Shown: piece by piece, positions 5,279-37,628 of the stretch
Position numbering within the stretch: position 1 is the first letter of the stretch
Layout: every line of letters starts with the position of its first letter
Origin: Dimorphilus gyrociliatus
Taxonomy: Eukaryota; Animalia; Annelida
Assembly: GCA_904063045.1 (NCBI GenBank)
Contig: CAJFCJ010000190.1
Coordinates: 1 to 37,628, forward strand
DNA length: 37,628 nucleotides
Direction of reading: 5' to 3'
The notes under the pieces: model-generated
What the model was told of the DNA's origin: nothing
Seen by the model: the letters and a program-made list of their open reading frames with translations, nothing else
Database searches by the model: none
Program-made: the position numbers and the translations under genes

Positions 5279-5516
5279 GTTACATCCTCTTGGTAAACAC
5301 AAATATAAACTAGACAATTTGGCGGTATTATTGGCAACTTGTTATTAAGATAAGAAGATTAGATGTAAAGAGACAACAATATCATTCTGGCAGATATAAA
5401 AATAATAATATTGTTGTAGGTAGTGAATTATTTGGAGATGATAATTTCACAGAAGAAATATAGGAGAAATATTAATGTTTTTATCACACAATTTTATAAA
5501 CCTGGTTGAATTTTTC

Positions 5517-5649
5517 GGAGTTGATGGAAAACGTCCACAAACCAGATTTTTTGAGGTTAGGTTTTGGGTTGAAGAATGATTAGGCAAACCCAAGGGTAGG
5601 TTAGGGTTAGGGTAAAAGCACAGTTTTGTGGATGTTTTCCATGACAGCC
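5517..5649. mobile_element. 133-bp MITE with TTAGGG-like interior (Mutator-type, 9-bp TSD)
   Basis: Imperfect 25-bp TIRs (GGAGTTGATGGAAAACGTCCACAAA / GGCTGTCATGGAAAACATCCACAAA). Perfect TSD GAATTTTTC at 5508-5516 and 5650-5658. Shares GGTTAGGGTTAGGGTAAAAGCAC with the 207-bp copies. Confidence 0.85.
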
Positions 5650-5799
5650 GAATTTTTCACTTAAGATGATCATTTGACTTTGAACATAATGTTTCAGACT
5701 CTTTGTTTCTTGATGAACAAAATAATAATCAATCAACATTGACCTAGAAAAAAGAGCATGTCTTGAAGATCAAACCAAAGTATTAAGTTTTAATGATAA

Positions 5800-7224: not shown

Positions 7225-8195
7225 GCAATTTAGGACTATTAGCTTCTGCTGCTAATTTGCTGCTTTTGACACCTCCATTAACAAAACACTCATCTAAGAG
7301 TCATGCTGATAATCTAATTGCTCTTGGAAAAGGTTTAATTGATTCTGGACATAATGTGAGCATTGTACGACAAGGAACTGTTAGATTGGATGAGCCTGGC
7401 AATATTTCAATGTTGGATGTACATTCACCAGTTTCTGAAGCAACTCTTGAACTTCTTGCAGAAGCTGTAACACAAACTTCAATTGATATGCTATATCAGA
7501 ATATATCTCATATAAATATGGATAAACATTTTACTATTTTTTGGAATGTCTTTACTCAAAAATTTACTGAAAGATATGCAAAAAAGTCTTATTCAATTTC
7601 CAGATATTCAATGGATTTGGTCCTTAAAATGCAATTTAGAAAAAGATTATCCAAACATTCATACTTTTGAATGGATTCCTCAAAAATACCTTTTGTCTAA
7701 ACAAAATTGTATTCTATTCATATCACATGGAGGTTTAAATTCCATTTATGAAACAATGTACTCTGGCACTCCAGTTTTAGTCATCCCAATCCCAACAGAC
7801 AGTATGGACAATTCAATAAGATTAAAAAGACATGGAATGTTGGAAATTCTACATTTTCATACAAAAGATGTCTCATTTCTTGAAGAATATATTGAAATGA
7901 TGGTGAAAGATAACTCATATATGAAAATGGCAAAAAGAGTTTCAGCTCTTTTGAATTCTCAAAACCTAAACCATTAGAAAAGGCTGTTTATTGGATTGAG
8001 CATGTATTAAAGTTTGGTGGCAATCATTTAAGGCACTCTGCAATGGATATGTCTATGTATAAACTATACAATTTGGATTTATTAGCAATTGCAATCATTC
8101 TAAGCTTCTTAATTATTTGGTTAATGAAAAAGCTATTTGTTTTTTCTTTTGTAAAATGTTCTTCAATTTTCTTGAAACATTCTAAAAAAGAATAA
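7225..8195 (+). pseudogene. UGT: UDP-glucuronosyl/UDP-glucosyltransferase with a large internal deletion and frameshifts
   Basis: N-terminus ANLLLLTPP...SH...LGKGLIDSGHNVSI. Signature FEWIPQKYLL...FISHGGLNSIYETMYSGTPVLVIP. C-terminus KAVYWIEHVLKFGGNHLR, a TM helix and HSKKE*. Only about 320 codons versus about 520 typical. The join near 7550 changes frame, there is a second frameshift near 7970, and no ATG exon was found. Confidence 0.85.
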
Positions 8196-9641
8196 AAATG
8201 TTATTTTTCCAGATCAATTTATGGCTTCAAGCATTTCAAATTTTAAATTTTAAACACCAGTTATCACTTGGAAATATTTACTTGAAGAATTAATCTTTTT
8301 TATCTGCAAAAAAACACCAGAGTATTATTGAAGGATTTTGATATTTGATGGTAGAATGGAAAATATTCAGAGCTTGGTAGGAAACTAATGGTATGAAGAC
8401 TATTCACTTCAATAACTTTTACTCTTAAATCTCATATATCTGTGGAATATCCCCCTGCTTATTATTTGGTTATTCAATTAAAACTTGAATGTTGTCTATA
8501 AATAATTTCTTTTTATAAGGAACAATACTTGATTTAAACAATTTATTATTGACTTTGACAGATGCAGACAGTTGCATCATTTATATTCTGAGCAGATTTG
8601 TATTGAGTGCAATTTCTTTCTTTCCAATACTTCCAATCAGATCAAAAGCAGTTTCTCTCTAATTCAGATTTAGAGGACTATGATTTGCACTCATAAAAAC
8701 AAATAATTAGTAAACAATATAAAATAGATTCCAATAGGAATTTTTCAAATAATTTCAATTCGAGTATTCAAATTGTTAAGGATATTGTTCTTCTTAAAAA
8801 ATCTAATACTACTCTGAAATATTCTATCATTTAATATTTGTAATTTTGAAAAGATAAAATGCAGCTAAATTCAAAGTTTATTCAACATTTGTTCAAATAT
8901 TGTTGTTTTTGAAATGGAGAATAATCCAAATATAACTGGACTTCAAATATTTATTAAAACATTAAAATTAATTTCTTTTCACAATTGCAATTTGAATAAT
9001 ACTCAGGCTTAACTATTGAGGATATTTTAAAAATTTTTAGAAATTCTTGTCCTTGACCTTAGATATAGTTTTATAAAATTACTATTTAGATGGTTATAAT
9101 GATTACAGATGATTATTATTATCTATAACAGGCTGATAGAATTATATGATTACGGTCTTACTAAAACTCAGTTTTAATATGCTCTATTTATTCGAAAAGA
9201 TTTATAATTTTACAGTTTATAAGATATATAATTATTAACTCATTACAACCATGTTTTAGTAAGGCCCAATTGCAGTAAATGATATTTTTAATTTTGTTTA
9301 TTAAAGAATAAAATTCATGTTCTTCATGTGATGCTATGGAAATGCATTTGCATTTGGAGAGTATATACTTGAAAATATGTTTCATAAATAAAATTTCAGC
9401 CATTTTGAATATTCTAAATATTCTTGGTAATAAGCCAATTGAATCATTCTTAAAGAAATTTCCATTATTTGTAACACCTATCCAACTGTTGAGTACTTGT
9501 TAGAAAGAAGACATGACTTTCAGTACTTGAGAGAAGATATACATCACAAAGAAACTTAACTGGTAAGAAGTGATTCGATTTCAATACAAATATAGTTCTA
9601 TAAATTCTTCAGTTGCCTCTGAAATTTTCTATCCAATCATC

Positions 9642-11555
9642 TTAATACTTTGCCTTCCATTTAGTATATGGAACTAAATGGAACTCTAATTTCCTGTCAC
9701 AATAGAAGAATCCAACTCTTTCAATTTGAATGAATTCACCAATAGAAACATTATGGATATCATTTTCTAATAGCCAAAGTTGTTCACTTTTTGAATTTAT
9801 ATTAAATTTCTCTTTTAAATCGCTAGTATTTTTATTATCATTTTGTAAATTTTCATATTCATATAATTGGACAGTAACCAGACTATTTGGTGTAACCCAA
9901 CTAATTTCTCTTTCAGATGATTTTCTATTTGAAAAATTTTTTGTAAATGAAATTTCTGTTACAATATCATTTTCAATATTTTTCTCTATAACAAAAACAT
10001 TGCCAAGAGACGATAAAGTGATTTCTTCATTGGATGCTAGATGAAAAGCGTCTTCCTGTGATATGAAGATTTCTGATGAATATACAATTTGTTTAGATCC
10101 AAGAGAAGGATTTTTCTTGTTTCTCAAAACTTGAATTTCCAATTCAACTGCATTTTCATTATCTTCAAGAGACGACGACAGTAATTTACACTTGACATGA
10201 TTTTTTAAAGGAATGCCTAAAATTCTAGGGCTCTTTGGATCAATATACTCTTTATTAAGAGTCCAAAGTTTATCCCATGAAATAGTTGTCATCATTTGAG
10301 AAATTCCCAATGATAAAATATATTCTCTTAAAACCTCCATACATAGTCCTCTTCTCTTAAATCCTCTTAGTGTTCCTAATCTTGGATCATCCCATCCATT
10401 GACAAAACCATTTTCAATATAGAATTTCATTATCCTCTTTGAAACGAGTGTTCTCTCAAAATGGCTTCGTCCATAGGTTTGAATCTCTGGCTTATTCTCT
10501 AACTCCAAATTGTTGATAAACCAATAATATTGTTCATTTCTATCACTATATTCATTTGTCCTCAAAACCAAAGTTATTCCATTCAGCGAATCGATAATCG
10601 GAGAAGCAAAATCAAAAGTTGGATAAATAGAGTGTTTATTTCCAGTTTTTGTTTCGGAAGAAGAATCAATACATTTGAAAATGATTGGATCTCTTAAACA
10701 TGCATTTAAGTGATCAAATGATATTTTGGCCCTAAGACAAAATCTATTTTCAATTCCCTTGAACATTCTTTTAAAAATTTTTATATTCATTTTACAGTCA
10801 GTGTCTCTATTTTTGTTGGATTGCTTGATCCTTCTCTGCCTACAAATATCCTCAAGATTTGTGTCATCAACATAGGCTTTACCATCATTAATCAGCTTTT
10901 TTGCAAATTGATATATTCTATGAAAGTGATCAGAAATCCTAACAAAAGTGTATTTTTGGATTCCCAAAAGCTTTAAATCTTCCAGAATTGCCTCTTCAAT
11001 ATCATCGCCTCCCTTATCATTTGGATTAGTATCATTAAAACAGATCCACATTTGACCATTCCTCGATAAATAATCATTGAAAATCGCTCCTCTAGCATGT
11101 CCAATATGCAAATATCCATTTGGTTCGATTGCAAATCGTGTTACCACTTTCCCAACATTTCCTGTATTGATTTCACCATGACTAATGTTGTTAAATGAGT
11201 TTAAGTATTCTTTATTAATTTCAAGATTTTTCCTATAAAAATCAGCAAGTTGGCGAAATGGAAATTCATCTTCGTTGGAGTCATTAGGAAAAGAGATTGA
11301 ACAGTAAAGAATTCCAAAAATTAAATCTGCAACTTTTTGATCATTTTCTACTAAAGATTCAATAATTTCTTCTAATTTTTCATAAAATTCTCTTAATTCT
11401 ATAGTTGATGATTCACAATTGAATTCTAATAGAAAATTTGGAGCATTTAATTCTTTGATATTTGTCTCAAGAATTTCATATTCTTTCTCCTTAATCTTGT
11501 ATTTTTCCTTTAATAAATAATTTATAAATTTGTCTTTACAATCATTTGTCGTCAT
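9642..11555 (-). CDS. GUS1: Stand-alone eukaryotic-type glutamate--tRNA ligase (GluRS), intronless, microsporidian-like, with divergent catalytic motifs
   Basis: 637-aa uninterrupted ORF: VVTRFAIEPNGYLHIGHAR (HIGH), FNDTNP, CLRAKI, LRDPII, YPTFDFASPIIDSLNGIT, LRTNEYSDRNEQYYWF, LVSKR, GWDDPRLGT, and a C-terminal anticodon-binding region (IQIERVGFFYCD). No WHEP repeats or ProRS fusion. Confidence 0.93.
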   Translation of the reverse strand: MTTNDCKDKFINYLLKEKYKIKEKEYEILETNIKELNAPNFLLEFNCESSTIELREFYEKLEEIIESLVENDQKVADLIFGILYCSISFPNDSNEDEFPFRQLADFYRKNLEINKEYLNSFNNISHGEINTGNVGKVVTRFAIEPNGYLHIGHARGAIFNDYLSRNGQMWICFNDTNPNDKGGDDIEEAILEDLKLLGIQKYTFVRISDHFHRIYQFAKKLINDGKAYVDDTNLEDICRQRRIKQSNKNRDTDCKMNIKIFKRMFKGIENRFCLRAKISFDHLNACLRDPIIFKCIDSSSETKTGNKHSIYPTFDFASPIIDSLNGITLVLRTNEYSDRNEQYYWFINNLELENKPEIQTYGRSHFERTLVSKRIMKFYIENGFVNGWDDPRLGTLRGFKRRGLCMEVLREYILSLGISQMMTTISWDKLWTLNKEYIDPKSPRILGIPLKNHVKCKLLSSSLEDNENAVELEIQVLRNKKNPSLGSKQIVYSSEIFISQEDAFHLASNEEITLSSLGNVFVIEKNIENDIVTEISFTKNFSNRKSSEREISWVTPNSLVTVQLYEYENLQNDNKNTSDLKEKFNINSKSEQLWLLENDIHNVSIGEFIQIERVGFFYCDRKLEFHLVPYTKWKAKY

Positions 11556-11737
11556 GGTAGATTTTATGTTTTAAAAAATAAATGACCTTGTCCCTTACCT
11601 TACTAAATGATAAAATAGGCCTAGAAATATAGAAAAAGTAAAAGTAAACCAGTTTTGGTAGCTACGTGTCTAAAGATCAATAAGTTGGTATATTTTGTTG
11701 CTATAGGCCTCGATTCTTGACTAAACCTACCATTAAG

Positions 11738-11749
11738 AGTCACGTGACT
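11738..11749. promoter_or_regulatory. Perfect 12-bp palindrome AGTCACGTGACT (E-box / CLEAR-type bHLH-ZIP site) about 185 bp upstream of the GluRS ATG
   Basis: Seen directly. GTCACGTGAC is the known USF/TFEB/MITF-type site. Function is inferred only. Confidence 0.4.
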
Positions 11750-11851
11750 GAATTTTAAAACAGATAGGAGGCTAAATTTATAAATAAACAGTCAAAGACA
11801 GTTGATCAAAATGGTTGCTGACAAAAACTGTATAGTCGTACTAATAGATAC

Positions 11852-11995
11852 GGGATGCTGAACAAAACGTTCCCTATTTTGCATTTTTACCCTAACCCTA
11901 ATCCAAACGTGGGTAAAGTTATTTCTGCTTTTTTGTCCAAAACCTTCAGTTTGGCCTTAACATAGACCAAAAAGAATAAAACCTAACCCTAAACT
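11852..11995. mobile_element. Partial/diverged copy of the TTAGGG-containing MITE family
   Basis: GGATGCTGAACAAAACGTTCCCT...TTTTACCCTAACCCTAA resembles GGATGCGACAGAAAACGTCCAC...TTTTACCCTAACCCTAA at 36156. No second TIR or TSD found. Confidence 0.5.
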
Positions 11996-12064
11996 GTAAT
12001 GTCATCTTTATTTTTAGTGGCTTCATCTTCTCCAGTATCATCATTTTTCTCAGAGATTTTATCT

Positions 12065-12340
12065 TTATCCAACTTCTGAAATATTATTATCTTTATTTTC
12101 AGTCAAATTTCCTTCATTGTTTAAATGGTATTGTTGAATTTTTGAATCTGTTAGCCTTTTGATAGTTATAGTACAATTTCTTTTGTAACAGATTTTGCAA
12201 ATTGGTTTGTTTCCATGAATAAAGTTCCCACAAAGACAATATTTCAAATACTTCTGTCTTCCATAGATTCTTAAATCACAATTACTGCATTTTGAAGCTA
12301 TTCTATTCTTTTGATGGAAATGCAGATGATTACTTCAAAT
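12065..12340 (-). other. Cys/His-rich zinc-finger-like coding fragment (PHD/C1-like), probably a TE or gene remnant
   Basis: The frame reads KCSNCDLRIYGRQKYLKYCLCGNFIHGNKPICKICYKRNC, with a stop upstream and no start context. Confidence 0.35.
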
Positions 12341-13615
12341 ATTTTTTTGTGATGATTCAAAGTCAGTTAAAAAAAATTCAAAATGGCTGAAATTTCATTT
12401 TCAAAATATTATATGACAAGTTGACAAGTGAGAAAAATATATTCAGTTATTAGAATTAAAATAATTCTTAGAAATTTAGTAAACTATAGTTTTTTCTAAT
12501 ATTAAATTATTTAAAAGAAATCAACACTTAGATTGAAAATTACACACACATTTTATATTTTTAAAATATTCAAGGAGAGGCAAAAAACTATTCCAACTTC
12601 TTCAAAAGTGGGCCATTGTATCTCATGCCGGCAATGTTCTCCCAAGGCCATTTTCTCCCAAAATTGTTTACTCCCATACTCATTAGAGGGTTTTTGTTGG
12701 GGTTTAATAGAAAATGTAAAGGAAAGGTTACTGTTTTCTTCAAAATTTAATAATAGTTGTTTGTCAAGGAGGTAGAAGGAATCTATAAAAAATTATTTAG
12801 GAATGGTAATTCAAGTACATTTTACCACAAAGATAAAAGCTCTTTGATTAATTAGACATGAATATTGGAAATATAAATTAAATAATGATTAAGAATTGTT
12901 TTGTATGTTGATAAAAGATGGTAATCATATTTTCTTCTATCTTGCAATGAAATTCTTGAAAGCTTTAGAAAAAAAGGCTTAAAAAAGAAAATTCTTCATG
13001 ATTTTAATATTTAAAATTTCATAGGATAATTCCTAATATGAAAAATATTTTTGGCTGTCTTTTCTATATTCTACAATTCAATAAATTATGCAATTCAACT
13101 TATCAATTCTACCTTCAATCCCCAAAAGTTCATGGAATATTTATTGAAGGTCACCTTTACGCAAAATCCGATCAAAGAGAAAATGATTATGGACCTGTTG
13201 TAAAAGTACCAACGTCTAGACTTTATGTGATTAATAAAGTTTGCGAAAAGCTTGGCTATGACTCATTTCACTCTTATCAATCTATATATAGGATACGACA
13301 ACAGAAACAATTCCAGATTGATGTAATTAAATGTTGTGAGCCGTGAGTAAACAATTGAATATGTTGAAAGTAAGAACTGTATGAAAATTCAAATTATTAG
13401 AGTTAAGGGTTAGGCCTATAGCCAACTTTTATTAACATTTCTTTAAGTGGATATTTCTATCCGTATAAAAAACAATGCAAACCCCAAGACCTAACTAAAA
13501 TATATTTGCAGATTCGAAATAATCAGTGGTTCTTTCGATGGATTAAAGTTGAAGTGTATCATGAAAAATTCAACATGTATGAAAAATATTATTGAAATTT
13601 CTTCAATTTCAAATA

Positions 13616-18242: not shown

Positions 18243-19552
18243 TCTCTCACTCTAGAATTCTATTTCTCCATAGATAACTTTGCGCCTAAAGGCTTTTTTA
18301 AATGCAGTCACGAAACGTATTAGATACACGAGAGTAAAGTTTGCGATGGAATTGTCAACTGTCTGCATAAAAGTGATGAACTACTTTGTGAAGATATTGA
18401 AAAGCCTCCTAAGAGATATTGTCAAGAATATTTACCTTTTTCTATAGAATGTTTTTTTGACAATTTTCAATCATTTATCAAAATCAATAAATTCTATAGA
18501 AGCATTAAAATTGATGGTAAAATCCATTTTTATAATCTACAACAAACTTATTGGAATCTATTGAATTTTACCATTTTCAATGCATTTATCTATTATGATA
18601 ATGAAGATAGATTTACTTCTAAATCATTTCCAAATGTTGTTTATATCACATTTAAAAAGATACATAAATTTAACACTTCCATGACCTTTATATCACCTTT
18701 AAAATTACTAATTTACCTTGATTTTTCTAATAATCCAATCAGGAATTTAGATTTCTTGAAAATATTGAAAGCAAACCATCTAAATTATTTTGATATATCT
18801 TTTACTAAAGTAGAAAAAATTCTGGAAAAAGATTTCAAATATTTGAAATTTTTGAAAATTTTCAAAATAACTAATTGTAATATTAAAGCTATTGAGAAGT
18901 TATCACTTCAAAAGTTAAATAATCTTTCAATGTTTGATGCTAGTCATACAAACTTCCCAATTTTTTCACTTCAATTAATTGTTGAAGAAATGATCAATGT
19001 GAAGAGTGTTTTTACAAAATATCATTCATTGTGTTGCCATTCAATTCACTGTAAATCGGATGTAAATTTTTATAAAGTTTGTTCAAAATTAATTGGTTTG
19101 GATGTGACTCGTGCCATTATTTGGATATTCTCAATACTTGGTATATTTCTAAATATTACTTTTTTCATATTTGGCCTCATTTCCAAACATCTCAAATCGA
19201 GATATTTAAAATGTCTGCAAGCAGTCAGCAACCTTTTAGTCACACTGAACATGTTTGTTATTGCCATATATGATATCCACTTTGGCGGTTCATACATGTT
19301 GAAGAGTGAAATTTGGAAACACAGCAACATGTGCATGGTACTTGGAGTAAGCATGACGTTTGCGCTACTACTATCATCGTTCAGTATGTTCTTAATTACA
19401 CTGGAGAGATTTCAAGTGTTGAATCAACCTCTTCAAATACCTATACTGTCAACCTATCCATTTGTATGGTTAATGTTAACAGTAGCTGTTTGCTCATTAT
19501 TGAGAGCAACATTTTCAATTTTCTATCATGTCAGTTACTTAAATTGGAAAGC

Positions 19553-19700
19553 AGATGTGACAGAAAACGTTGATGAGTTCAAAGTTTAACCTAAACCATA
19601 ATCCAGCCTTAGCCCTTACTTTTCAACTTGTACTTTCCCAAATTCTTAGTTAACAATACCAAACAAAATTTCCAAACAGTCCACATTTTCTGTCAACCTC
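19553..19700. mobile_element. Diverged intronic copy of the MITE family
   Basis: AGATGTGACAGAAAACGTTGA ... reverse complement GAGGTTGACAGAAAATGTGGA, with a degenerate CCCTAA-like interior. It lies in the intron between the GTCAGT donor (about 19530) and the CTGCAG acceptor (about 19752). No TSD. Confidence 0.6.
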
Positions 19701-20304
19701 TGCCCAAGAGACACTACTCTATACAAATGTATTCATGTATGTTTTACTGCAGAGTACATTTAGTCATTCTTCAATTTGTTTTAATCTCCTGGTTATAAGC
19801 AACATTGAAAAAGGAAGATTATTTATCTCTATCCTATTTATAATACTATTACCAAGCTTAAGTTTTATAACATTGTTCCTTTACTTAAGAATGTTTTGTA
19901 TTGTTAGAAATTCTTATAAAAAGACAAATTTCAATAAACACCCTTCTCTTGCTTCTTACAATGAAAAGAGTACAGGTGTCAAGAAGAATATTCAAAAAGG
20001 TATAATTCTATTAGCCCTTAATAACACTTTCATTTGGTTGCTGGTATCAATTTTGGGTAGGCCTAAATATAGAGTTTAGAAAAGTTGTGTCTAGTATCTA
20101 TTTTTTCACTATCTAGGAATGTTATTGATATTAAAGCAACTCAGTTTAAAAGAAGATATCTATATTTTATTTATGACTGTATTTTTCTCATTACATTCTG
20201 TTGCAAACAATCTCATTTTCTATTCAAATGAAATATTCCAATATTTTAAATTGTTAAAAAGACTTTCAACTGCAGAAAGGCAATTTTCATTCATTTTCAT
20301 TTCT

Positions 20305-20876
20305 NNNNNNNNNNNNNNNNNNNNNNNNNNNNNNNNNNNNNNNNNNNNNNNNNNNNNNNNNNNNNNNNNNNNNNNNNNNNNNNNNNNNNNNNNNNNNNNN
20401 NNNNNNNNNNNNNNNNNNNNNNNNNNNNNNNNNNNNNNNNNNNNNNNNNNNNNNNNNNNNNNNNNNNNNNNNNNNNNNNNNNNNNNNNNNNNNNNNNNNN
20501 NNNNNNNNNNNNNNNNNNNNNNNNNNNNNNNNNNNNNNNNNNNNNNNNNNNNNNNNNNNNNNNNNNNNNNNNNNNNNNNNNNNNNNNNNNNNNNNNNNNN
20601 NNNNNNNNNNNNNNNNNNNNNNNNNNNNNNNNNNNNNNNNNNNNNNNNNNNNNNNNNNNNNNNNNNNNNNNNNNNNNNNNNNNNNNNNNNNNNNNNNNNN
20701 NNNNNNNNNNNNNNNNNNNNNNNNNNNNNNNNNNNNNNNNNNNNNNNNNNNNNNNNNNNNNNNNNNNNNNNNNNNNNNNNNNNNNNNNNNNNNNNNNNNN
20801 NNNNNNNNNNNNNNNNNNNNNNNNNNNNNNNNNNNNNNNNNNNNNNNNNNNNNNNNNNNNNNNNNNNNNNNNNNNN
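20305..20876. other. Assembly gap (572 N)
   Basis: Run of N. Confidence 0.99.
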
Positions 20877-21039: not shown

Positions 21040-21268
21040 TAAAAAATTTTATACAGATTGTCAATATCTTATTTCTTTTTATATCGTAAAATTTTCTGAT
21101 AAGATCCACAATCTTGAAGAATACACTCTCTAGTTACTGTATTGTACTTTACGCTTGTTCATTTATGCATATAAAATAGACTTGGTCGATGATTGATATC
21201 TTTCAATACTATCTAATATTTTGAAGGCCAAAAGTCTTACATACAAACTATTTCTGCTGAATAAAGAT

Positions 21269-21718
21269 ATGGAAACTACAGACGTTTCTTTTGCGAAAGA
21301 GGCAATTAAAGAGGCCTGTAAAAGTCAATCAGAAGGTGGAATTCCAATTGGGTCAGTTGTTGTAATAGATAACAAAATTGTTAGTAGAGGTCATAATCAA
21401 AGAATTCAGAAGAATAGTTCAATTCTTCACGGTGAAATGGATGCAATTGAAAATTGTGGTAGGCTTAATCATTCGGATTATTCCAAAGCAACAATTTATA
21501 CAACGCTATCTCCATGTTCAATGTGCACCGGAGCAATTTTACTATATAAAATTCCAAAGGTTGTTTTATGTGAAAATGAAAATTTTATGGGTGATGAACA
21601 ACTTTTAAAAAGTAAAGGTGTTCAAGTTGTTAATTTGAACTTACAAGAATCCATTCAAATGATGAAAGAATTCATTCGCAATAAACCAGATTTATGGAAT
21701 CAAGATATTGGAGTATAG
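21269..21718 (+). CDS. FCY1: Cytosine deaminase, FCY1/bacterial zinc-dependent type (149 aa, intronless)
   Basis: EGGIPIGSV, RGHNQR, HGEMD (HxE), YTTLSPCSMCTGAILLY (PCxxC), ENENF, and C-terminal LWNQDIGV corresponding to yeast Fcy1 WFEDIGE. ATG at 21269. Confidence 0.92.
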   Translation: METTDVSFAKEAIKEACKSQSEGGIPIGSVVVIDNKIVSRGHNQRIQKNSSILHGEMDAIENCGRLNHSDYSKATIYTTLSPCSMCTGAILLYKIPKVVLCENENFMGDEQLLKSKGVQVVNLNLQESIQMMKEFIRNKPDLWNQDIGV

Positions 21719-21767: not shown

Positions 21768-21974
21768 GGGGTCGACAGAAAACGTCCACAAATGAGAAAT
21801 TTCAAGACAAAAATTTGGATTGAGAAATGGTTGGGAAGAAGAAGAGAGCAACTGATTTGTAATTAGGAGGGTCTCCTCTAAGGGTTAGGGGTAATGGAAA
21901 AGGTTAGGTACAGCTAAGGGCTGGGTTAGGGTTAGGGTAAAAGCACCAATTTGTGGACGTTTTCTGTCGCATTC
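21768..21974 (+). mobile_element. 207-bp MITE with TIRs, perfect 9-bp TSD and telomere-like G-rich interior (copy A)
   Basis: Perfect 21-bp IR CGACAGAAAACGTCCACAAAT. TSD ATTCTAGAG at 21759-21767 and 21975-21983. GGGCTGGGTTAGGGTTAGGG at 21918-21937. Confidence 0.95.
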
Positions 21975-22285: not shown

Positions 22286-23806
22286 ATGATAGGCAATCTC
22301 TTTTTTATCTTATCTCTACTAAGATTCTTACACTACTCTTCTTCAAGACCGAATAGTAAGAAGAAATAAATGCTATTCAGTTTCTTTGTCATAATTTAAA
22401 TTTTTTAATTTAGTTTGTTTCACTGAAGAGATTGATAATTTTAAAGTGGTGGATAATCATTTACAAACAATATTGTCAATATCTGTTGAAGAATGTAAAT
22501 TTCAATGTATTGATAATGCAAATTGCAAGTGAGAAATATAAAATATTTTATTCAGTTTACTACAAGTTTATCTTTTTGTAGGTCTATTAATTACAATAAA
22601 AGTTCATCAGATTGTTACCTAAACTCGGAAGATAGATATTCATCGAGTGGAAATTTTATCGAAGATACTCAAGTTAACTATCTAGGACCGAAATTTGGAG
22701 CTTGCGGTAAAGAATACGAAAAATCAATAGAAATGTATATTTCACTATTAACATTTTCATTTAACAATTCAGATACTGTGATCAATCCAAAGGAATGTGT
22801 AAATCTGTCTAAAACAATGTGTGGTACAACTGATACTGATAACGCTCATTGTAGAGCTTACGGATGCTGTTTTTCAAATGGAAAATGCTATTACGATGAT
22901 ACATATTTACCTGGATTTTTAAAAGTTCGAAGACATTTTAAACATTTCAATACATTAGCGATATTTAGCGCAATTTCCTTAAAAGATTGCGCAAGAAATT
23001 GTCTTCAAAGGTACAGTTGTAACTGTTTCAATTATAACGAGATTACAACTGTTTGTCGATTGACGTCTGAAGCCTGTAAACAAATTAATACAGTGTCTTT
23101 TTCCCGCAATTACACATATCATAGATTGGCATTTAAGTCTCTAACTTGCTACGATGCAGGCTGTTCGCAGCAAACTTCCACCACCGCTCCAGTAGGCGGA
23201 TTACGAGATTGCAGAACCAAATGCAACAACAACGTCAATTGCGAAATGACAATGTTTGTTCCTGATCAAAGATCTAATCAGTGTTATATAGTGACATCTT
23301 CAACATCATTGTGCAATTTTAAAGAAGCAGCGAGTGGAAAATTTATCGTTAAGCATTCATGTTTGATTGGACCAATTTTCGACGATGAAAAACGTACTAA
23401 AAGTCAAAAAATACAAAGAATTACGGACGATGATGATGATAACACTTGTATTACTTTGGAAACGGGTAAAATTTTTAATCTAAGAATTCCTTGGCCCTCT
23501 GTCGATGGAGAATTGACGAACTTTCTTATTCGAATTAAAGGTGACAATTTACAAGAATGTATTAATGTTTCAAAAGGCCTTTCAGCATCTGGAATACTAG
23601 CTTACATTCCGATTGATATTCAACCGAATCCAGTTTTCCTTGGAACGCATCTAGCCTGTAAATTGGTTGATGGAGACAATCATATATCGTGTACATACTA
23701 CTGCATTTGCGAAAGTTATTACTGCGAAGCTGTATATATCAAAGCTTTTGCCGAAACCGAAGATAATATGAAGATATGCCATTATAATCTAACAAATACA
23801 CTGTAA
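22286..23806 (+). CDS. Secreted PAN/apple - trefoil (P-type) - PAN - PAN protein with a Cys-rich C-terminal domain
   Basis: Exon 1 MIGNLFFILSLLRFLHYSSS (ATG 22286, donor GTAAG). PAN 1 spans two exons (SVEECKFQCIDNANC/RSINYNKSSSDCYLNSE). Six-Cys trefoil CVNLSKTMCG...CRAYGCCFSNGKCYY. PAN SLKDCARNCLQRYSCNCFNYNEITTVCRLT. PAN-like GLRDCRTKCNNNVNCEM...CYI. No disruption seen. Confidence 0.82.
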
Positions 23807-26153: not shown

Positions 26154-27749
26154 TTAAGCGAGAACTTGCAAATTTGCATAATTCTTTAAAATATTTTTAA
26201 TATTTTGAATTTGACTGAAAGTTAGTAAACAAAATCTAAAATCAACAAATTTTAAGTTATATCCACAATGAAAAAGACAATTAAAAAATGGTAAAAATTG
26301 ATATTTTATTAGTCTATTCTTTTGAAAATTAACTGTTTCAAGTTTTAAGCAAACTTTGAGCATATTTCTAATAGTTTGAAAATTATTTATAGTCAATTTA
26401 CATTTACTGAAATCAATGTGTTTTATTGTTTTTGATGATTGAGCAAGTCAATCACAAATGTCTATTAATCCATTCTTCATATTTCTATTACCGCTTAAAT
26501 TTAATGTATGAATATTAGGACAATTGTTTATTAGACATCCAATGCTTGAACAGTGATTTTTATTCACATTACAATTCACAAAGCAGATAATTTGAATTGT
26601 ACTCAATGACTGAACTAGTCCATTGCAAATTCTTAAAATTCCATTATTCATATGTGTTGAATAGCTTAATTTTATTTTTTCAATTTTACAACAATTTTTC
26701 AAAAAATTTTCAATGTAGACGCGTTGAATTTCGTTCAATTTTCTTGAACCGAATTGAAAGTTTTTTAATGTGTGCAACGACTGATCCAAACCTTTACAAA
26801 TTTCTGTTAGTTTATCACTCAGCCTACTGTTTCTAATTAGAGAAATTTTCTCAAGTTTTGCATGATTGTCATCCAAATTACAATGAGCGAGAATAAGTCT
26901 TTCTGAACTACTCGATGATTGGACGACGCCTTTGCAAATGTCTATTATACCATTTCCCATATTTTCATTTCTACTTAGATTTAATATTTGAAGCTTTGAA
27001 CAACTACTCAACAATGTTCCCAAATTTTTACACTGATTTTCCAATAGATTACATTTGCGTAAAAAGATTTTTTTTAAACATTCCGATGATTTAATCAATT
27101 TGATAAAGATATTTGATAATCTATCTCCAATCCTATCATTTCCGGTCAAAGAGATTATATCAATTTTTGTACAATTTTCAAACCAATTTTCGATACTACT
27201 ACATTGATTGTCGTCTAAATCACACTAACTTAGATTAATAGATTTCAAACTATTGGAAAATTGGATGAGGCTTAGCGAAGATATTTGATAATCCACTCAC
27301 CATTTTATCATTTCCCATTAATTGAATTATTTCTATTCGTTTACATTTAATTAATATATTTCCAATATATCTACACTGACTTTCGGTTAAATAACAATAA
27401 GGGAAACTAAGAGATTTTAACGTAGTCCATCACAAATATACATTAAGCTTTACTGGTATTCTTTTCCTCACATAGACTGAATTTTTCAATTTTATGACAA
27501 TTTTTCAACATATTTCCAATATTTAAACTTTGTTTATCATTGAGAGTGCAATTTTTAAATTCTATAACTTTCAAATTGACTTTAAGTGACAATTTTATAA
27601 ATGAAATACAAATTTTTGACAATCCATCGTCTATTTCTATATTTTTATCATCTCTTAAATTTAATATTTTATCTTCATATTTCAATATTTCATAACGTAT
27701 ATTCTTATTTAAGAACAAAGGAACCCACTGGAGTGTTAATTGAAGCCAT
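26154..27749 (-). pseudogene. Ribonuclease-inhibitor-like LRR gene, disrupted paralog of 29440-30960
   Basis: Same repeat (CSKLQILNLSRNENMGNGIIDICKGVVQSS). ATG 27749 is frameshifted near 27720, frameshifts and stops occur at 27150-27440, and TGA at 26448-26450 is in frame with the 26154-26396 ORF. Confidence 0.8.
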
Positions 27750-29439: not shown

Positions 29440-30960
29440 TTATATGTCAATTATACTGGGGTACAGTAGATTTCTTATCTTCTCCTTATCTTTTTCACAA
29501 GATATAGACTTCTTCAAATTCATTTTCTTTACAGTTTTTGATAGTCGAAGACAATTGCAAATCTCTAATAATCCAAGATTTCCAATCATCCAATTCCCTT
29601 CAAGATTAATTGTTTCTAGTTTAGAGCAAATTTGAAATAGATTTCCAAGATGGCGGTATTGTTCTTTTTGTATTTTGCACCAGCTTAAATTGATATGCAT
29701 TAAAGTATTCGAAGAGTGGATAAGTCCGTTACAGATACTTTCAAGTCCATTTCCTATATTTCCATTCCAGTCTAGGTTAATAGTTTCTATTTTCCAGTAA
29801 TTTTTCAACAAATTTCCTAATCCGATGCATTGCGTTTCGTTTAAGTCACATGACCAAAGGTTGATACATCTTAAACTATTCTGCGAATTAAGAAGACCTT
29901 CAAATATATCTAATAACCCATTACCCATGTGATCATTTCCTCCTAATTGGACTGTTTCTATTTTTTTGCAATTTTTCAATAGACTTTCAATTTGTCTACA
30001 ATGATTTGGAGTTAATTGGCAATATCCAAAGTTGATAGATTTTAAACTACTGGACGATTGAACAAGCCCATCACAAATGTAGAATAATCCTTTTCCAGAA
30101 AAAGGATTCTTTCCTAGAACTATAGATTCTATTTTGCAGCAATTTTTCAACAGTTTTCCAAGATGTCTACAACAATTTTCATTAAGATCACAATCATGGA
30201 GATTTATCTCTTTTAAATTGTTTGCCGAATGATGCAATCCTTTACAAATGTACTCGATTCCATTTCCCATATTGATGTTATTTGAGAGGATTATTGCTTG
30301 TATTCCAGAACAGTTTTTCAGTAAATATTCAATCATTTTACATTGATGTTCATTTAAATTACAGAAAATGAGACTAATATTTTTCAAATTGTTCGATGAC
30401 GGAATGAGTGCATTACATATGTTTAATAATCCATTTCCCATTTCCTTATTCCAGCTTAGATTTATTTTCTCTAATTTTGAACAGTTGTTCAATAAAAATG
30501 CAATCATTTTACATTCTTGTTCATTAAAATCACAATATTCAAAATTAATTTCCTTTAAATTATCTTTTGATTGGACTAGTCCATTACAAATGCTATTTAA
30601 CGAATTACCAACATTTGCAATCCATCCAAGTTTTATTGTCTCAATTTTTGAACAGTGTTTGAACAGATTTCCCAGACTTTTACACTCTTCTTCCTCTATA
30701 GTAAAACGTTGGAATTCAACAGTCTTTAGAGAACTTGTTGAAAAATTAAGTCCTTCGCAAACTTTTGTTAATCCTTTCATCATATTTCCAATCATGTTTA
30801 GCTGTATTATTTTAATGCTTGAACACCACTTTAACAAATTAGCAAGTATTTTGAATTCCTCTTCATTAAATTTACAATATTTTATACGAATATCTTTTAA
30901 ACTACTTGATGATTTCATAAGTCCTGTATAGATTTTTGATAATCCATTTTCAACGTTCAT
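29440..30960 (-). CDS. Ribonuclease-inhibitor/NLR-type LRR-only protein (506 aa or more)
   Basis: Intact ORF of about 8.5 tandem 57-aa units (e.g. CSKLEKINLSWNKEMGNGLLNICNALIPSSNNLKNISLIFCNLNEHQCKMIEYLLKN). The frame stays open upstream to about 31048, so the true start may be in a further exon. Confidence 0.85.
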   Translation of the reverse strand: MNVENGLSKIYTGLMKSSSSLKDIRIKYCKFNEEEFKILANLLKWCSSIKIIQLNMIGNMMKGLTKVCEGLNFSTSSLKTVEFQRFTIEEEECKSLGNLFKHCSKIETIKLGWIANVGNSLNSICNGLVQSKDNLKEINFEYCDFNEQECKMIAFLLNNCSKLEKINLSWNKEMGNGLLNICNALIPSSNNLKNISLIFCNLNEHQCKMIEYLLKNCSGIQAIILSNNINMGNGIEYICKGLHHSANNLKEINLHDCDLNENCCRHLGKLLKNCCKIESIVLGKNPFSGKGLFYICDGLVQSSSSLKSINFGYCQLTPNHCRQIESLLKNCKKIETVQLGGNDHMGNGLLDIFEGLLNSQNSLRCINLWSCDLNETQCIGLGNLLKNYWKIETINLDWNGNIGNGLESICNGLIHSSNTLMHINLSWCKIQKEQYRHLGNLFQICSKLETINLEGNWMIGNLGLLEICNCLRLSKTVKKMNLKKSISCEKDKEKIRNLLYPSIIDI

Positions 30961-32780: not shown

Positions 32781-35700
32781 ATGCAGTTTTTAGTACTGTT
32801 AAAGTTAATCTTGTACAGTTACTTTCCCCTTATGATTATCAGCTTATGCGGATTTCATGAAGATAATTTGAAAATTCACATGTTTAATAGAAGTGCTGTG
32901 AATTATAAACTGGAACCTATTGAGGAGAATGACAACTATATTTATGGTTATTTAAAAGTTGACGTTTCGAAAAGAAATTTATTTGAATTCATAGCATTCA
33001 AAATATTACCCGAATCGTTCTACAACATGATTTGCACTCTGTTAGGTTTTGATTCTATTCATTTCAGTGCAAATATTTGCCAGAAACCCGGAAGTTTGTA
33101 GTTTATCTCACCTAAAAATATCTTTAGTTTTTTATAGTTTTTTCATTCAAGGTCAAATAACAATTCATATTTCAAAAAATGTTAAAACTTGTTGCGTTTT
33201 GTGAGTATTGTTTAAGGGAAGAGGCATTTTCTACTATTTTCAACACTTTTCTCTTAAAGAGAGATCTTTAACTTATATCTCTTACAGCCATATATATAAT
33301 TTAACATATTACAAGTATCTTCGACTTTTCTGCTTGAAATGCTTCAAATTGCGCAGTTCATGTGTGTACTACATTCATTTGCTTTTGCTATTACAATTCA
33401 TACTTCTCAAAAGATATATTCGCCTACGAATTACAGAACGACGGAACACAGCCAACAGCTTACGAGTTAATTATGAGGGAAAATTCAATAAACTACGAAT
33501 TAACCAATGGCGATTTTCAAATTGACAAACAATTTGTTTGCTCACATTCGCAATACATTTTAAAAGAAAATAGTGTTCCTATTCAAAAGAACGACATCAC
33601 TAAACAAATCAGATTATTCAGAAAATTGAATATTAGCTTTATATTTGTAAAAAATATGTTTGAAAATATCTTTTGCAATGACTACGAAATTCAAGGTAAA
33701 AGAATTAATTATAGTTTGAAATTTGAAAAAAATTTCGATCTCGTTTAAAATGAAATCATCAATTTTTTGTATTTAGATATGGCAATTAAACATTTGCCAG
33801 CAATATACCTTTTTAAGCACAAGGATCACGAATTGTCAAATGATGCAACCAGTCTTATGGTATCTTCAAAGACTTATGGAAATTTTCCCTTCCTCTTCAG
33901 TAGAGGTCAGGAGAGGACAAATCTTATGGAAATGACTTGTAAATACAACAACAATCAACTTGTAGACACTACAAAGCCGAAATTCGACCTAGAAGATTAT
34001 TGGACGAAGGTAAGTGATGCTAAAATTGTTTGTAATCTTCACATTTTAAATATAAGGAGAAATGTCAATGCAGAGAATGACATGCGTTGATACGATTAAT
34101 TATCATTTTCAAAAGAATGGAAAATTTCCGGTATTTGGAGAGTGTAAATGGGATAATTCCTATATGAATGGTTGTAAACTTTTTTATACCAAAAGTAGCA
34201 ATTATCAAATCAGATTGCATTGTTTTAAGAATAAATGTAAGTATAGCCATTTCAGAGATATACTATCAACAATTTTGGTATAATATTTGCCCAATAAAGT
34301 TAAGAATAAGAGAAGTTGATATTGTCTGTAGACATTTCGGTTTTGACAAAGGAAAGCTGGTTTTTAAACAAATGAACAGAAATTTACCAGTAGAGTTTCG
34401 TCACTTTCCCCTCAAATTATCCGTCCATCTTCCGATTCACACCTGGAAGAGTGCAACGGGATATATCACTGCCCTTTCTTCGGGCCAAAGAATTTAACAC
34501 AGTACTCCTGTCACACTCCCAAAATCATTGTTATATATAAAGAGTTTTTTCAGACAAGACAAAAATCTACGATCTGCATTGCTGATGAGACCAACATTCT
34601 TTAAAACCGTTATAAAATGCTATAGGAGTATTAGAAATCGTAAAAATTCTCTTCAATAACAGCAACTTTGAAAAAGAGATAATTCAATTTTTTGAATAGC
34701 TAGAAGAAGTGATAAGAATAATTTTTTCCCAATTGACTATCTACAATATGAATATTTTCAAATAAATCATCCATTAACCATTAATGAAACAATGCAATTT
34801 TGTAGAGAGAGAAATCTCTCACTAGCGGATTATATTCATCCGCATGACTTTAGTAAAATCTTTCACATAGTAAGGCTAAAAGCGTTTGAAAAGTATGGTT
34901 ACGATTTTGAACGAGTCAAAGAAACCCTATCAAGGCTATTTTTACCTATTGGTATTTAAAAATCTTTTATTGAATCATTCCTCATTTTGTTTTTCTTTTC
35001 TTTTCCTTCATGAAGGTTTTCAAGAGACTGTTAATTCTAGAAAAATTCCTACAGTTGTTTCATCAACAAACTATCTGTTTGAAATGATTCCGACTCTCTA
35101 CGCTTTTGATTTAAAGTAATTTTGCTTCTACAGTATTTCTCTTCTCTGGTTCTTTTTGTTGTTCCGTCTATCTATCTCTTTCGATTTCAAAATCAGATCA
35201 TTTGAAAAGATTTATGGTTATAAAGGTGGAAAATACGGTATAAGAAAGCAGCACATATTTCATCCATTTTGGTTATGTTACAAACTAAACTTTCCCGTTG
35301 AACAAGTTCGACATCCGGAAATCTTTATATATAATCTTACTATTACAAGGATTGACTGCTCGCAGAGGATATTCATTTCATTCATATGTACAAATCGAAA
35401 ATTTGAAAAAACTACGGAATGTATTGTATTATAGTTAATAATTGTGGCAAATTCAATATCAGTTTCTTTAATTTTACATTTCAAAAAGTCGTAGGGAATA
35501 GGCATTTAGAGGTCAAGTTCACAGGATGTAAACATAAGCATTTTCTTTGTCCAAATAGCCGTACATGTATTAATCCTGGAAATCTATGTGATGGTGATCG
35601 GGATTGCATTGATGGTGAAGATGAACTAGATTGCGAGCAAAATATTCCATTCAAATGCGACAGCGGAGAAAAAATAGCACTGCAGTTCGTTTGCAACTTT

Positions 35701-37628
35701 AATTTTGATTGTATAGACAGCTCTGACGAGGAGAATTGCAGTAAGTACCAGTTTATATTTTACATCTCGAAGAATTTATTAATCCGATTTCAAAAAATTA
35801 GCTAACGACGAATGCCCTGAATACAAGTAATCGACAAGAAAATTTTATTATAAAAAGCATTGATTGTCATTTATTTTCATTCAGATGCAAAAATCGCCAA
35901 TGTATTGATAATGCACAAGTACTCGATAATCACCAGAACTGTTTTGATAATACAGACGAAGGCTTCAACTCCACCTGTTTGTAGTAAAAAATTATGTCTA
36001 TCTTAGGCCCATTTGAATTTATACACACAGATTGTAAGAAGAAGAAAGGATTCAATTGTCATTCTCAATGTATTGAAAAAGAGAAGATATGCAATTTTAA
36101 AGCTGATTGTCCAGGAGAAGTTGATGAATTGCAAATAGGTACATGCAAACTTGGTGGATGCGACAGAAAACGTCCACAAATTGGTGCTTTTACCCTAACC
36201 CTAACCCAGCCCTTAGCTGTACCTAACCTTTTCCATTACCCCTAACCCTTAGAGGAGACCCTCCTAATTACAAATCAGTTGCTCTCTTCTTCTTCCCAAC
36301 CATTTCTCAATCCAAATTTTTGTCTTGAAATTTCTCATTTGTGGACGTTTTCTGTCGACCCCAAACTTGGTAATTCAGCTGAACAATTTCTAAACCGCCA
36401 CTTTTATACAAATACGCGTTGTGACGTCAAATTAAATTCATATGGAAAAATTGAAGCACATTTTCTATTTCCATGGTCAAATAATTTAAATTGTAAAGAT
36501 AAATGCAATTTAGGAAAATATTCTTGTTGGTATACCAACTTTTGCCTATCAATTGAACTAGTCTGTTTTTGAAACTAAAAAGAGAATTTTAATCCAATTG
36601 GAGTTTTCAAGTGTAAAAACGAAAATTATTTCATTTCCCACTCACAAATATGCAATAGTATAGTTGATTGTAGAGGCGGAAATGACGAATTGTTTTGCTC
36701 CAATCAACTAAATTGTCCTTGAGGTTGTCAATGTCGCTCAAACTATTCGATTGAATGTTCAGGAGCGATAAAAGATGGATTTAGAATAGATGACCATAAA
36801 AAATTGACAATTAAAGATTTAAGCGAAGAGATAAGCAGCTTTGATATTTCATATACTATCACATACTTGGAAATTAGTAGAGTATATTTAACAACACTTT
36901 CACCATCCTGTTCCTTTCCCAATTTGTATTACTTGAATGTAAAGGATAATCAAATATCCCATATCAATATGGATGAGTGTAGAATAGAAAAAATTTAAAT
37001 TTTGATTCTAGCAGGAAATCCAATTGATTTTCTCCTTCAGAGACCATTTGAAGTTTATCAAGATTTTTGCATTTTTCGTCATCCCAATACTTCATATTCT
37101 CTCCACCACTTATTTTTACATTGCAATCTCCAAATCTCAGGAATGGAAATTATTAAAATTAACATACTTTCCTTTAATTTGCCGAATTCTTTTCAAATTT
37201 TCCCTCTACCCATTACTTGTTCTTGTTGGAATCCTTTATTCTTATAATAAGGTAACAAATTATTAAAAGGGCCGCCAGACTGCTCTAAAATTATATAAAT
37301 TATACGTTAGATGGAAATCCTTGCATATAAACTACTAATCAATTCTTTGTATTGCGTAACACCAATGATTTATTCCAACTATGTGGCTTTCAAACTATTG
37401 AGCTACTTATATATCAAGATATTTTCTCTACAATATAAACGGTTAGTTGGTTATATAATAATATAGATTTAGGCCTAACATCTGTTTTGTAAAGGAAAAA
37501 AGCATTCGAAAAGTCTATCAACAAACTCATCCGACAAAGTTGTAAAACTATTTCAATTTTTAATTAAATACGAAAGTACATTTCGTATTTTTTCTATTGT
37601 TTTGTTTCAGGATTACATTTTATTAGGA
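32781..37628 (+). pseudogene. Third GRL101-like gene (signal, SRCR-like, CTL, LDLa repeats, LRR, partial 7TM), disrupted
   Basis: MICTLLGF and DIVCRHFGF (SRCR-like); MQFCRERNLSLAD...FICT (CTL); LCDGDRDCIDGEDELDC and VCNFNFDCIDSSDEENC (LDLa); LYYLNVKDNQI (LRR). In-frame stops at 35982-35987 and 36720. A MITE sits in an exon. Apparent deletion from the LRRs to a TM5-like segment near 37030. Confidence 0.78.
36156..36362 (-). mobile_element. 207-bp MITE, inverted near-identical copy B, inserted in an LDLa-region exon
   Basis: Reverse complement matches 21768-21974 at 206/207 by manual comparison. Perfect TSD AAACTTGGT at 36147-36155 and 36363-36371. Confidence 0.95.

Follow-up and report, generated by a model that had tools for sequence, protein, structure and literature searches.

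A microsporidian-type glutamyl-tRNA synthetase gene with an altered active site in a genomic contig of the annelid Dimorphilus gyrociliatus

Our results suggest that the annelid Dimorphilus gyrociliatus carries a glutamyl-tRNA synthetase (GluRS) gene of microsporidian descent. The gene lies on the reverse strand of contig CAJFCJ010000190.1 (assembly GCA_904063045.1, positions 1 to 37,628), and this whole stretch of 37,628 nt is referred to here as the window. It encodes an intact protein of 637 amino acids (aa) in which six otherwise invariant residues of the catalytic domain are replaced. The reading that we favour, with a probability of roughly 55%, is a true parasite-to-host transfer, in which the gene would be transcribed and its product retained as a synthetase-like protein that is altered or no longer catalytic, with charging left to the EPRS of the host (the metazoan GluRS-WHEP-ProRS protein).

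The open reading frame (ORF) runs from an ATG to a stop codon and contains no internal stop codons. With Pfam, three domains of a class I Glu/Gln-tRNA synthetase were found above their gathering scores: the catalytic tRNA-synt_1c (PF00749; aa 136-439, E=3.6e-73) and the anticodon-binding tRNA-synt_1c_C (PF03950; aa 444-537, E=3.9e-12) and tRNA-synt_1c_C2 (PF20974; aa 551-620, E=7e-11). The C-terminus lies 17 residues beyond the anticodon-binding domain. No GST, WHEP or ProRS domain was detected with Pfam, and aa 1-130 matched no family there. The segments LHIGHA and LVSKR align with the HIGH and KMSKS-type (xSKR) motifs of the solved GluRS structures 7wai and 7wrs. An earlier reading of the window from its letters alone (the sequence-only reading) had described an intronless 637-aa GluRS ending at the anticodon-binding domain; the ORF, the Pfam domains and the RNA-like contigs described below, which have no joints within the gene and reveal no intron, agree with this. 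The motifs that it had listed (EPNGYLHIGHAR, GITLVLRTNEYSDRNEQYYWFINNL, ISWDKLW and FHLVPYTK) are all found in the protein. The best NCBIfam model was gltX_arch, with 354.5 bits, under its cutoff of 401.75, and glnS scored 254.1. In maximum-likelihood (ML) trees with bacterial GlnRS as outgroup, the protein falls in the GluRS clade and not with GlnRS.

In support of a microsporidian origin, the best named matches were all microsporidian, both in a word-indexed search and in an exhaustive HMMER search. The GluRS of Encephalitozoon cuniculi matched over its full length with 44% identity (E=1.7e-144), and that of Hepatospora eriocheir with 48% identity over 81% of the protein and 57% within the catalytic domain. 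Further matches came from E. romaleae, Nematocida, Vairimorpha, Spraguea and Trachipleistophora, and overall identity to microsporidian GluRS was 41-48%. Fungal GluRS and metazoan EPRS align to the protein only from residue 130 onwards, with 36-41% identity. Three additional relatives (P0001-3) share 45-46% identity with it; their contigs are compact and gene-dense and have AlaRS and LSM as conserved neighbours, which is what true microsporidian genomes would show. Two of them, P0001 and P0003, which represent microsporidian genomes from public runs, are the nearest relatives of the window gene at full length. Note that the contigs of these two (L002 for P0001, L001 for P0003) have a common gene order near GluRS: AlaRS, an unknown gene of 684-708 aa, and LSM.

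The phylogenetic analyses, a 104-sequence ML tree and a 50-sequence tree under LG+C20 with posterior mean site frequencies (PMSF), placed the window protein within the Microsporidia (support 98/86; 99/98 without Nematocida). Before Hepatospora was added, the protein was sister to P0001-3 (100/99); with the partial Hepatospora sequence included, it became sister to Hepatospora (95/86) within a five-member clade (100/98). Metazoa plus Capsaspora formed a clade of their own (100/98), and constraining the window protein to Metazoa was rejected (log-likelihood difference 104.7; approximately unbiased (AU) test, p=0.0004). Thus, the trees and the AU test reject a grouping with metazoan EPRS, the outcome that the sequence-only reading had named as refuting its proposal.

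Since the window protein sits on a long branch in these trees, characters that do not depend on branch length were examined. Searches with aa 1-130 recovered microsporidian proteins and no others: Hepatospora matched with E=3e-24, P0001-3 with E=1e-14 to 1e-19 and E. cuniculi with E=0.01. Moreover, three deletions and two insertions set microsporidian GluRS apart from those of other eukaryotes, and the protein has all five. Because the N-terminal domain, the indels and the trees agree, microsporidian descent, from a donor lineage related to Hepatospora, is secure. The proposal of a microsporidian-type GluRS that is not an animal EPRS therefore stands on the best matches, the trees, the N-terminal domain, the five indels, the separate metazoan clade with its AU test and the lack of WHEP and ProRS domains. 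As in the microsporidian enzymes (Hepatospora eriocheir SYEC; E. cuniculi ECU02_1210, 642 aa), the length is about 630-660 aa, the three Pfam domains, the N-terminal domain and the indels are present, the protein ends after the anticodon-binding domain, and it nests among them in the trees. Metazoan EPRS has the same class Ic catalytic and anticodon-binding fold, with 38% core identity; however, its GST-like N-terminus, WHEP and ProRS are absent from the window protein, and the window gene is intronless.

The window copy differs from its microsporidian relatives in its active site, its host-like codons and its location in an animal scaffold. In an alignment of 101 eukaryotic GluRS, 62 columns are conserved to 95% or more; the window protein has the conserved residue in 52 of them, whereas 15 microsporidian enzymes have it in 59-61 each (Fisher's test, p=8e-5 against the 15 enzymes pooled; p=0.04 against the worst single enzyme). 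Six of its ten differences (P143I, A156G, R172C, D174N, R294K and Y314F) are unique to it, and Hepatospora is canonical at all six positions; these residues surround the pocket for the amino acid and ATP. P143I and A156G lie in the APEPSG...HIGHAKA block, where APEP becomes AIEP; R172C and D174N convert RFDDTNP into CFNDTNP, and Y314F converts YPTYDF into YPTFDF. D174, the first Asp in RFDDTNP, presumably corresponds to the substrate-contacting Asp66 of E. coli GlnRS, and Y314, the second Tyr in YPTYDF, to its substrate-contacting Tyr211. The alignment to 7wai and 7wrs displays the six changes plus EG-to-NG and fsRL-to-ygRS, and HIGH, SKR and LRTNEY are unchanged. Through this alignment, several of the changes map onto active-site or ligand-contact residues of PfGluRS (7WAI); note that the PfGluRS contacts (Pro317, Ala330, Asp350, Tyr491 and Leu540) come from a docking study and carry little authority (PMC12677556). 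The remaining four differences (S146N, K155R, H301E and L376M), as well as a TH-to-TL change, are common to related microsporidia and were rejected as losses specific to the window protein. The erosion of six active-site residues argues against a canonical GluRS role.

The frame and the pattern of substitution bear on selection. For sites at which the common ancestor with P0001-3 could be reconstructed, 86% of residues in universally conserved columns and 58% of those in variable columns are unchanged in the window lineage, so most of the divergence took place under purifying selection, which may have acted in the donor. We initially regarded the evolution of the gene as strongly accelerated, from an early branch length of 1.1 against 0.24-0.35; this was withdrawn, since its root-to-tip distance equals that of Anncaliia and its branch length is 0.86 against 0.67 for Hepatospora. 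In simulations of neutral decay (substitutions only, 637 codons, 29% GC), the frame stayed open in 21% of cases at 1% divergence, in 3.9% at 2% and in 0.05% at 5%; an open frame of 637 codons at 29% GC is therefore far beyond chance. Six changes at 62 sites, if neutral, imply about 10% amino-acid and 4-5% nucleotide divergence, at which about 0.1% of the simulated frames would stay open; with the lower confidence bound (nucleotide divergence of about 1.6%), the share rises to about 8%. Taken together, the open frame and the eroded pocket point to selection for something other than canonical charging, with a young insertion as a less probable alternative.

The gene is physically linked to host-type sequence in the assembly. 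The only run of Ns in the window spans 20305-20876, and the gap-free 20.3 kb before it (1-20304) carries the GluRS gene together with UDPGT and LRR+7tm_1 (leucine-rich repeat plus seven-transmembrane receptor) ORFs, so that a UDPGT remnant and a receptor gene of the LRR-GPCR type flank it. GC content is 25-33% throughout the window and does not shift at the gene. The genome paper states that the assembly was built from PacBio reads and went through four BlobTools decontamination rounds, and that its libraries had a strong GC bias (PMC7854359). Four sequencing runs (X1-X4) were aligned to the window as Logan contigs, X1 being the probable source run of the assembly. One X1 contig of 2,518 nt (9384-11901) matches the window without mismatches and contains the whole gene together with flanks of 258 nt and 346 nt, and its upstream end falls inside a fragment of a miniature inverted-repeat transposable element (MITE) at about 11850-11995. 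The depths of this contig and its two neighbours are 70, 114 (gene) and 88, in the same order as their GC (0.251, 0.296 and 0.258). As to uniform coverage, which the sequence-only reading had proposed as a check, the depth of the gene matches that of its flanks once GC is considered, since the differences follow GC and the libraries are known to be GC-biased.

Codon usage and gene context fit the same picture. GC content at third codon positions (GC3) is 0.22 in the window gene, 0.25-0.28 in host-like ORFs of the window and 0.38-0.54 in the sister microsporidia, and the log-likelihood of the synonymous codons favours a host model by 85.6 log units. When 28 proteins encoded next to GluRS on three sister microsporidian contigs were searched against the window with tblastn, only GluRS itself was found. 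In the relatives, neighbouring genes lie within 200-400 nt of GluRS; no gene lies so near the window GluRS, and its context is of animal type, unlike a compact, gene-dense microsporidian genome. In support of the claim that the gene is integrated in an animal scaffold, the gap-free contig, the contig joined to the MITE, the depth once GC is considered, the host-like codons and the lack of donor neighbours all agree. With assembled contigs as its basis, physical linkage to host-type sequence is supported, not proven, and a microsporidian-derived gene truly resident in host DNA is very probable. Partial matches with loose ends occur inside the gene at 9981, 10782 and 11430, and may be low-complexity matches or fragments from elsewhere in the genome.

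The gene is probably, though not provably, transcribed without introns, as judged from the coverage pattern. Run X2, from another study and under another organism label, yielded a contig of 2,046 nt that aligns to 9374-11396 with 1 mismatch; contigs of X3 and X4 cover 9389-11275. No coverage by X2, X3 or X4 was seen at 8464-9000 or 11568-13100; these three libraries, from two studies, cover the gene and not its flanks. Since this coverage is restricted to the gene and free of joints, an unspliced transcript with a 3' untranslated region (UTR) of at least 268 nt fits.

As the sequence-only reading had noted, animal-type neighbours and MITE copies surround the gene, and its intact ORF lies amid mostly broken ones; Pfam matches on the window ORFs, the alignments of the MITE copies and a UDPGT remnant split over two frames bear this out (Table 1). 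The other ORFs of the window, mostly fragmentary, include PAN, LDLa, RNI-type LRR arrays and a mariner remnant. In 37 kb there is a cluster of immune-receptor-like sequences, with LRR-GPCR, PAN, RNI-type LRR arrays as in NLR proteins, LDLa and SRCR-like fragments. Such pieces were seen at 18561-20079, 22523-23806, 26448-27149, 29440-30960 and 35419-35805, many of them apparently broken. The GluRS neighbourhood is a fast-evolving one. A small Cys-rich ORF at 12065-12322 had no Pfam match. Additional X1 contigs and X2 RNA-like contigs match the UDPGT remnant with 5-7 mismatches per 110-150 nt, which points to expressed paralogues elsewhere in the genome.

Table 1. Positions of the GluRS gene, its parts and neighbouring features in the window
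Feature	Position	Strand	Remarks
GluRS ORF, microsporidian-type, 637 aa, intact	9642..11555	(-)	ATG to stop; stop codon 9642-9644; Pfam, homology searches, trees
N-terminal domain, aa 1-130	11166..11555	(-)	no Pfam match; homologues only in microsporidian GluRS N-termini
Catalytic Rossmann domain, aa 136-439	10239..11150	(-)	HIGH and SKR kept; I143, G156, C172, N174, K294 and F314 replace otherwise invariant residues
Two anticodon-binding domains, aa 444-620	9696..10226	(-)	Pfam; 69-85% of inferred ancestral residues kept
Probably transcribed 3' flank, 3' UTR of at least 268 nt	9374..9641	(-)	X2 contig on 9374-11396, one mismatch across the entire contig
Candidate AATAAA and ATTAAA poly(A) signals	9287..9302	(-)	340 and 350 nt past the stop codon
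Inverted repeat, left arm	9377..9413	(+)	depth spike of about 2,978x; contigs of four runs break here
Inverted repeat, right arm	12373..12409	(-)	84-87% match to left arm; exact 19-nt core AAATTTCAGCCATTTTGAA
Degenerate MITE fragment, TTAGGG-like motif	11850..11995	(-)	about 300 nt upstream of the start codon
Intact reference MITE copy	21770..21973	(+)	among animal-type genes
MITE copy identical to the reference, inverted	about 36166-36371		amid animal-type genes
Degenerate MITE copy	about 5515-5650		alignment to the reference MITE
UDPGT remnant, two overlapping frames	7257-7977	(+)	Pfam
LRR+7tm_1 (LRR-GPCR) ORF	18561-20079		Pfam

Two kinds of repeat lie close to the gene. An inverted repeat of 37-40 nt brackets it, and its core, AAATTTCAGCCATTTTGAA, occurs in the window only at the two arms, against 0.06 occurrences expected by chance. 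Depth rises to about 2,978x at this repeat, against roughly 80x around it, and in all four runs the contigs are interrupted here; it is therefore a high-copy, apparently transcribed, genome-wide motif. That the arms are the ends of a transposon is not supported, since target-site duplications are lacking and the conserved core is on the inner side. The MITE is about 205 nt long, with terminal inverted repeats GACAGAAAACGTCCACAAAT and an internal telomere-like TTAGGGTTAGGG, and PAN, LRR, mariner and LDLa genes surround its intact copies. These two copies are identical, which suggests that the element was active recently. That a gene pair had been captured between MITE ends at 5.6 and 11.9 kb was considered and rejected, these being separate small MITE copies and not the termini of one element.

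The window contains a further candidate foreign gene. At 21221-21718 (+), an intronless ORF encodes a yeast-like FCY1-type cytosine deaminase of 165 aa (E about 1e-37 to solved FCY1 structures). Its GC3 is host-like (0.217), and it lies 345 nt past the assembly gap and about 50 nt before the intact MITE. The Atlas neighbours of this protein are prokaryotic clusters, and we know of no animal member of the FCY1-type family. A microsporidian origin was checked for this gene, and no link was found.

How might such a gene have come to its present state? In the reading that we favour, a single cytosolic GluRS gene from a Hepatospora-related microsporidian would have entered the nuclear genome of the host, in a region rich in repeats and pseudogenes and crowded with immune-receptor-like genes, and its base composition and codon usage would since have come to resemble those of the host. 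The EPRS of the host, whose presence we assume, would carry out the essential charging of tRNA-Glu, and the copy could thereby have escaped catalytic constraint after the transfer. Its frame would then be held open by selection for a function other than standard aminoacylation, and the product might be a pseudo-synthetase that binds tRNA or nucleotides, or else an enzyme of altered chemistry. Bacterial GluQRS/YadB, a truncated GluRS homologue, offers an analogy for a GluRS fold freed from standard aminoacylation; GluQRS, however, has no anticodon-binding domains, and its similarity to the window protein is slight (E=7.6e-9, well under the cutoff). By analogy with endogenous viral elements co-opted for antiviral defence, with a eukaryotic parasite as the source here, the host may even have domesticated the synthetase of its parasite: the disabled copy could act against the parasite or sense it, competing for the partners or the tRNA of the parasite enzyme, or have another tRNA- or nucleotide-binding role. 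We regard domestication as a long shot.

Several observations weigh against the favoured reading. The branch is like that of Hepatospora, so most of the divergence may predate the transfer, and the selection seen may be that of the donor. If only the six changes arose after the transfer, neutral survival of the frame would be unlikely (roughly 0.1-8%). As AT-rich microsporidia exist, host-like GC3 is no proof of long residence. The RNA-like contigs fail to reach the start codon by 160-285 nt, leaving the first 160 nt of the ORF barely covered, and X2-X4 were taken as RNA from their coverage pattern. The linkage is read from assembled contigs, which are interrupted at the repeats flanking the gene on both sides, and X1 is probably the source sample of the assembly and hence not independent. 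Finally, the exact protein was not found in public assemblies or gene calls; it therefore seems to be unannotated and unstudied.

The most serious competitor, although we hold it to be unlikely, is that of a recent insertion without function, with the frame open only for lack of time, transcription incidental and decay under way. A region rich in broken genes and the loss of six invariant catalytic residues would suit it, and since the branch length is near that of Hepatospora, little change after the transfer is needed; at 1% neutral divergence the frame survives in 21% of the simulations. At the divergence implied by the six changes, however, survival drops to the values given above, and indels would lower it further. 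The fully host-like codon usage, donor neighbour genes that left no trace, the decayed MITE fragment 300 nt upstream and the steady coverage in three libraries from two studies also speak against a recent arrival. At the other extreme, the product could be a working canonical GluRS, which would charge tRNA-Glu alongside the GluRS half of EPRS or in its place, a reading that shares the integration itself with the favoured one. The full domain set, with HIGH, SKR and both anticodon-binding domains, the 52 of 62 invariant positions kept, the open frame and the transcript-like coverage are what such an enzyme would present. Residues invariant in 101 eukaryotic GluRS are nevertheless replaced, among them D174 in RFDDTNP and Y314 in YPTYDF, and the NCBIfam score stays below the cutoff; we also know of no animal that lacks EPRS, which counts against this role. 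We consider it improbable.

It could also be that there was no transfer at all, and that the gene of a co-sequenced microsporidian was stitched into a host contig through the flanking repeats. The short-read contigs do break at repeats on either side of the gene, and the contig with the gene is deeper than its flanks (114 against 70-88). However, two false joins only 2.5 kb apart would be needed within a long-read contig, and the short-read contig that carries the gene extends 346 nt upstream of it, into a MITE fragment of a family that occurs among animal genes. The depth differences follow GC, no microsporidian neighbours lie within 10 kb on either side, against 200-400 nt in the relatives, and GC3 and codon usage are like those of host-type ORFs. 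Such an artefact is therefore very improbable.

Exchange between microsporidia and animals has precedents. E. romaleae acquired PNP and FPGS genes, and bacterial transporters have also passed into microsporidia (PMC3337132); transposons have been exchanged between microsporidia and metazoans (PMC4202319). The E. romaleae genes and the transposons involve the same partners and the same kind of evidence, phylogenetic incongruence together with genomic context. Those transfers, however, run into the parasite or concern mobile elements, and the window case is a housekeeping gene that would have passed from parasite to host. A limited literature search found no report of a coding gene passed from a microsporidian to an animal, and no literature linking microsporidia to Dimorphilus gyrociliatus.

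Genes of the translation machinery are usually thought to resist transfer. If the favoured reading is true, the window holds a rare, clean case of such a gene moving from a eukaryotic intracellular parasite into the germline of its host. Contaminant filters based on fungal similarity would tend to discard loci of this kind. The eroded active site in a frame that has been kept poses the question of whether we are looking at a new pseudo-synthetase function or at a gene just before its decay, and this in a small, tractable laboratory annelid.

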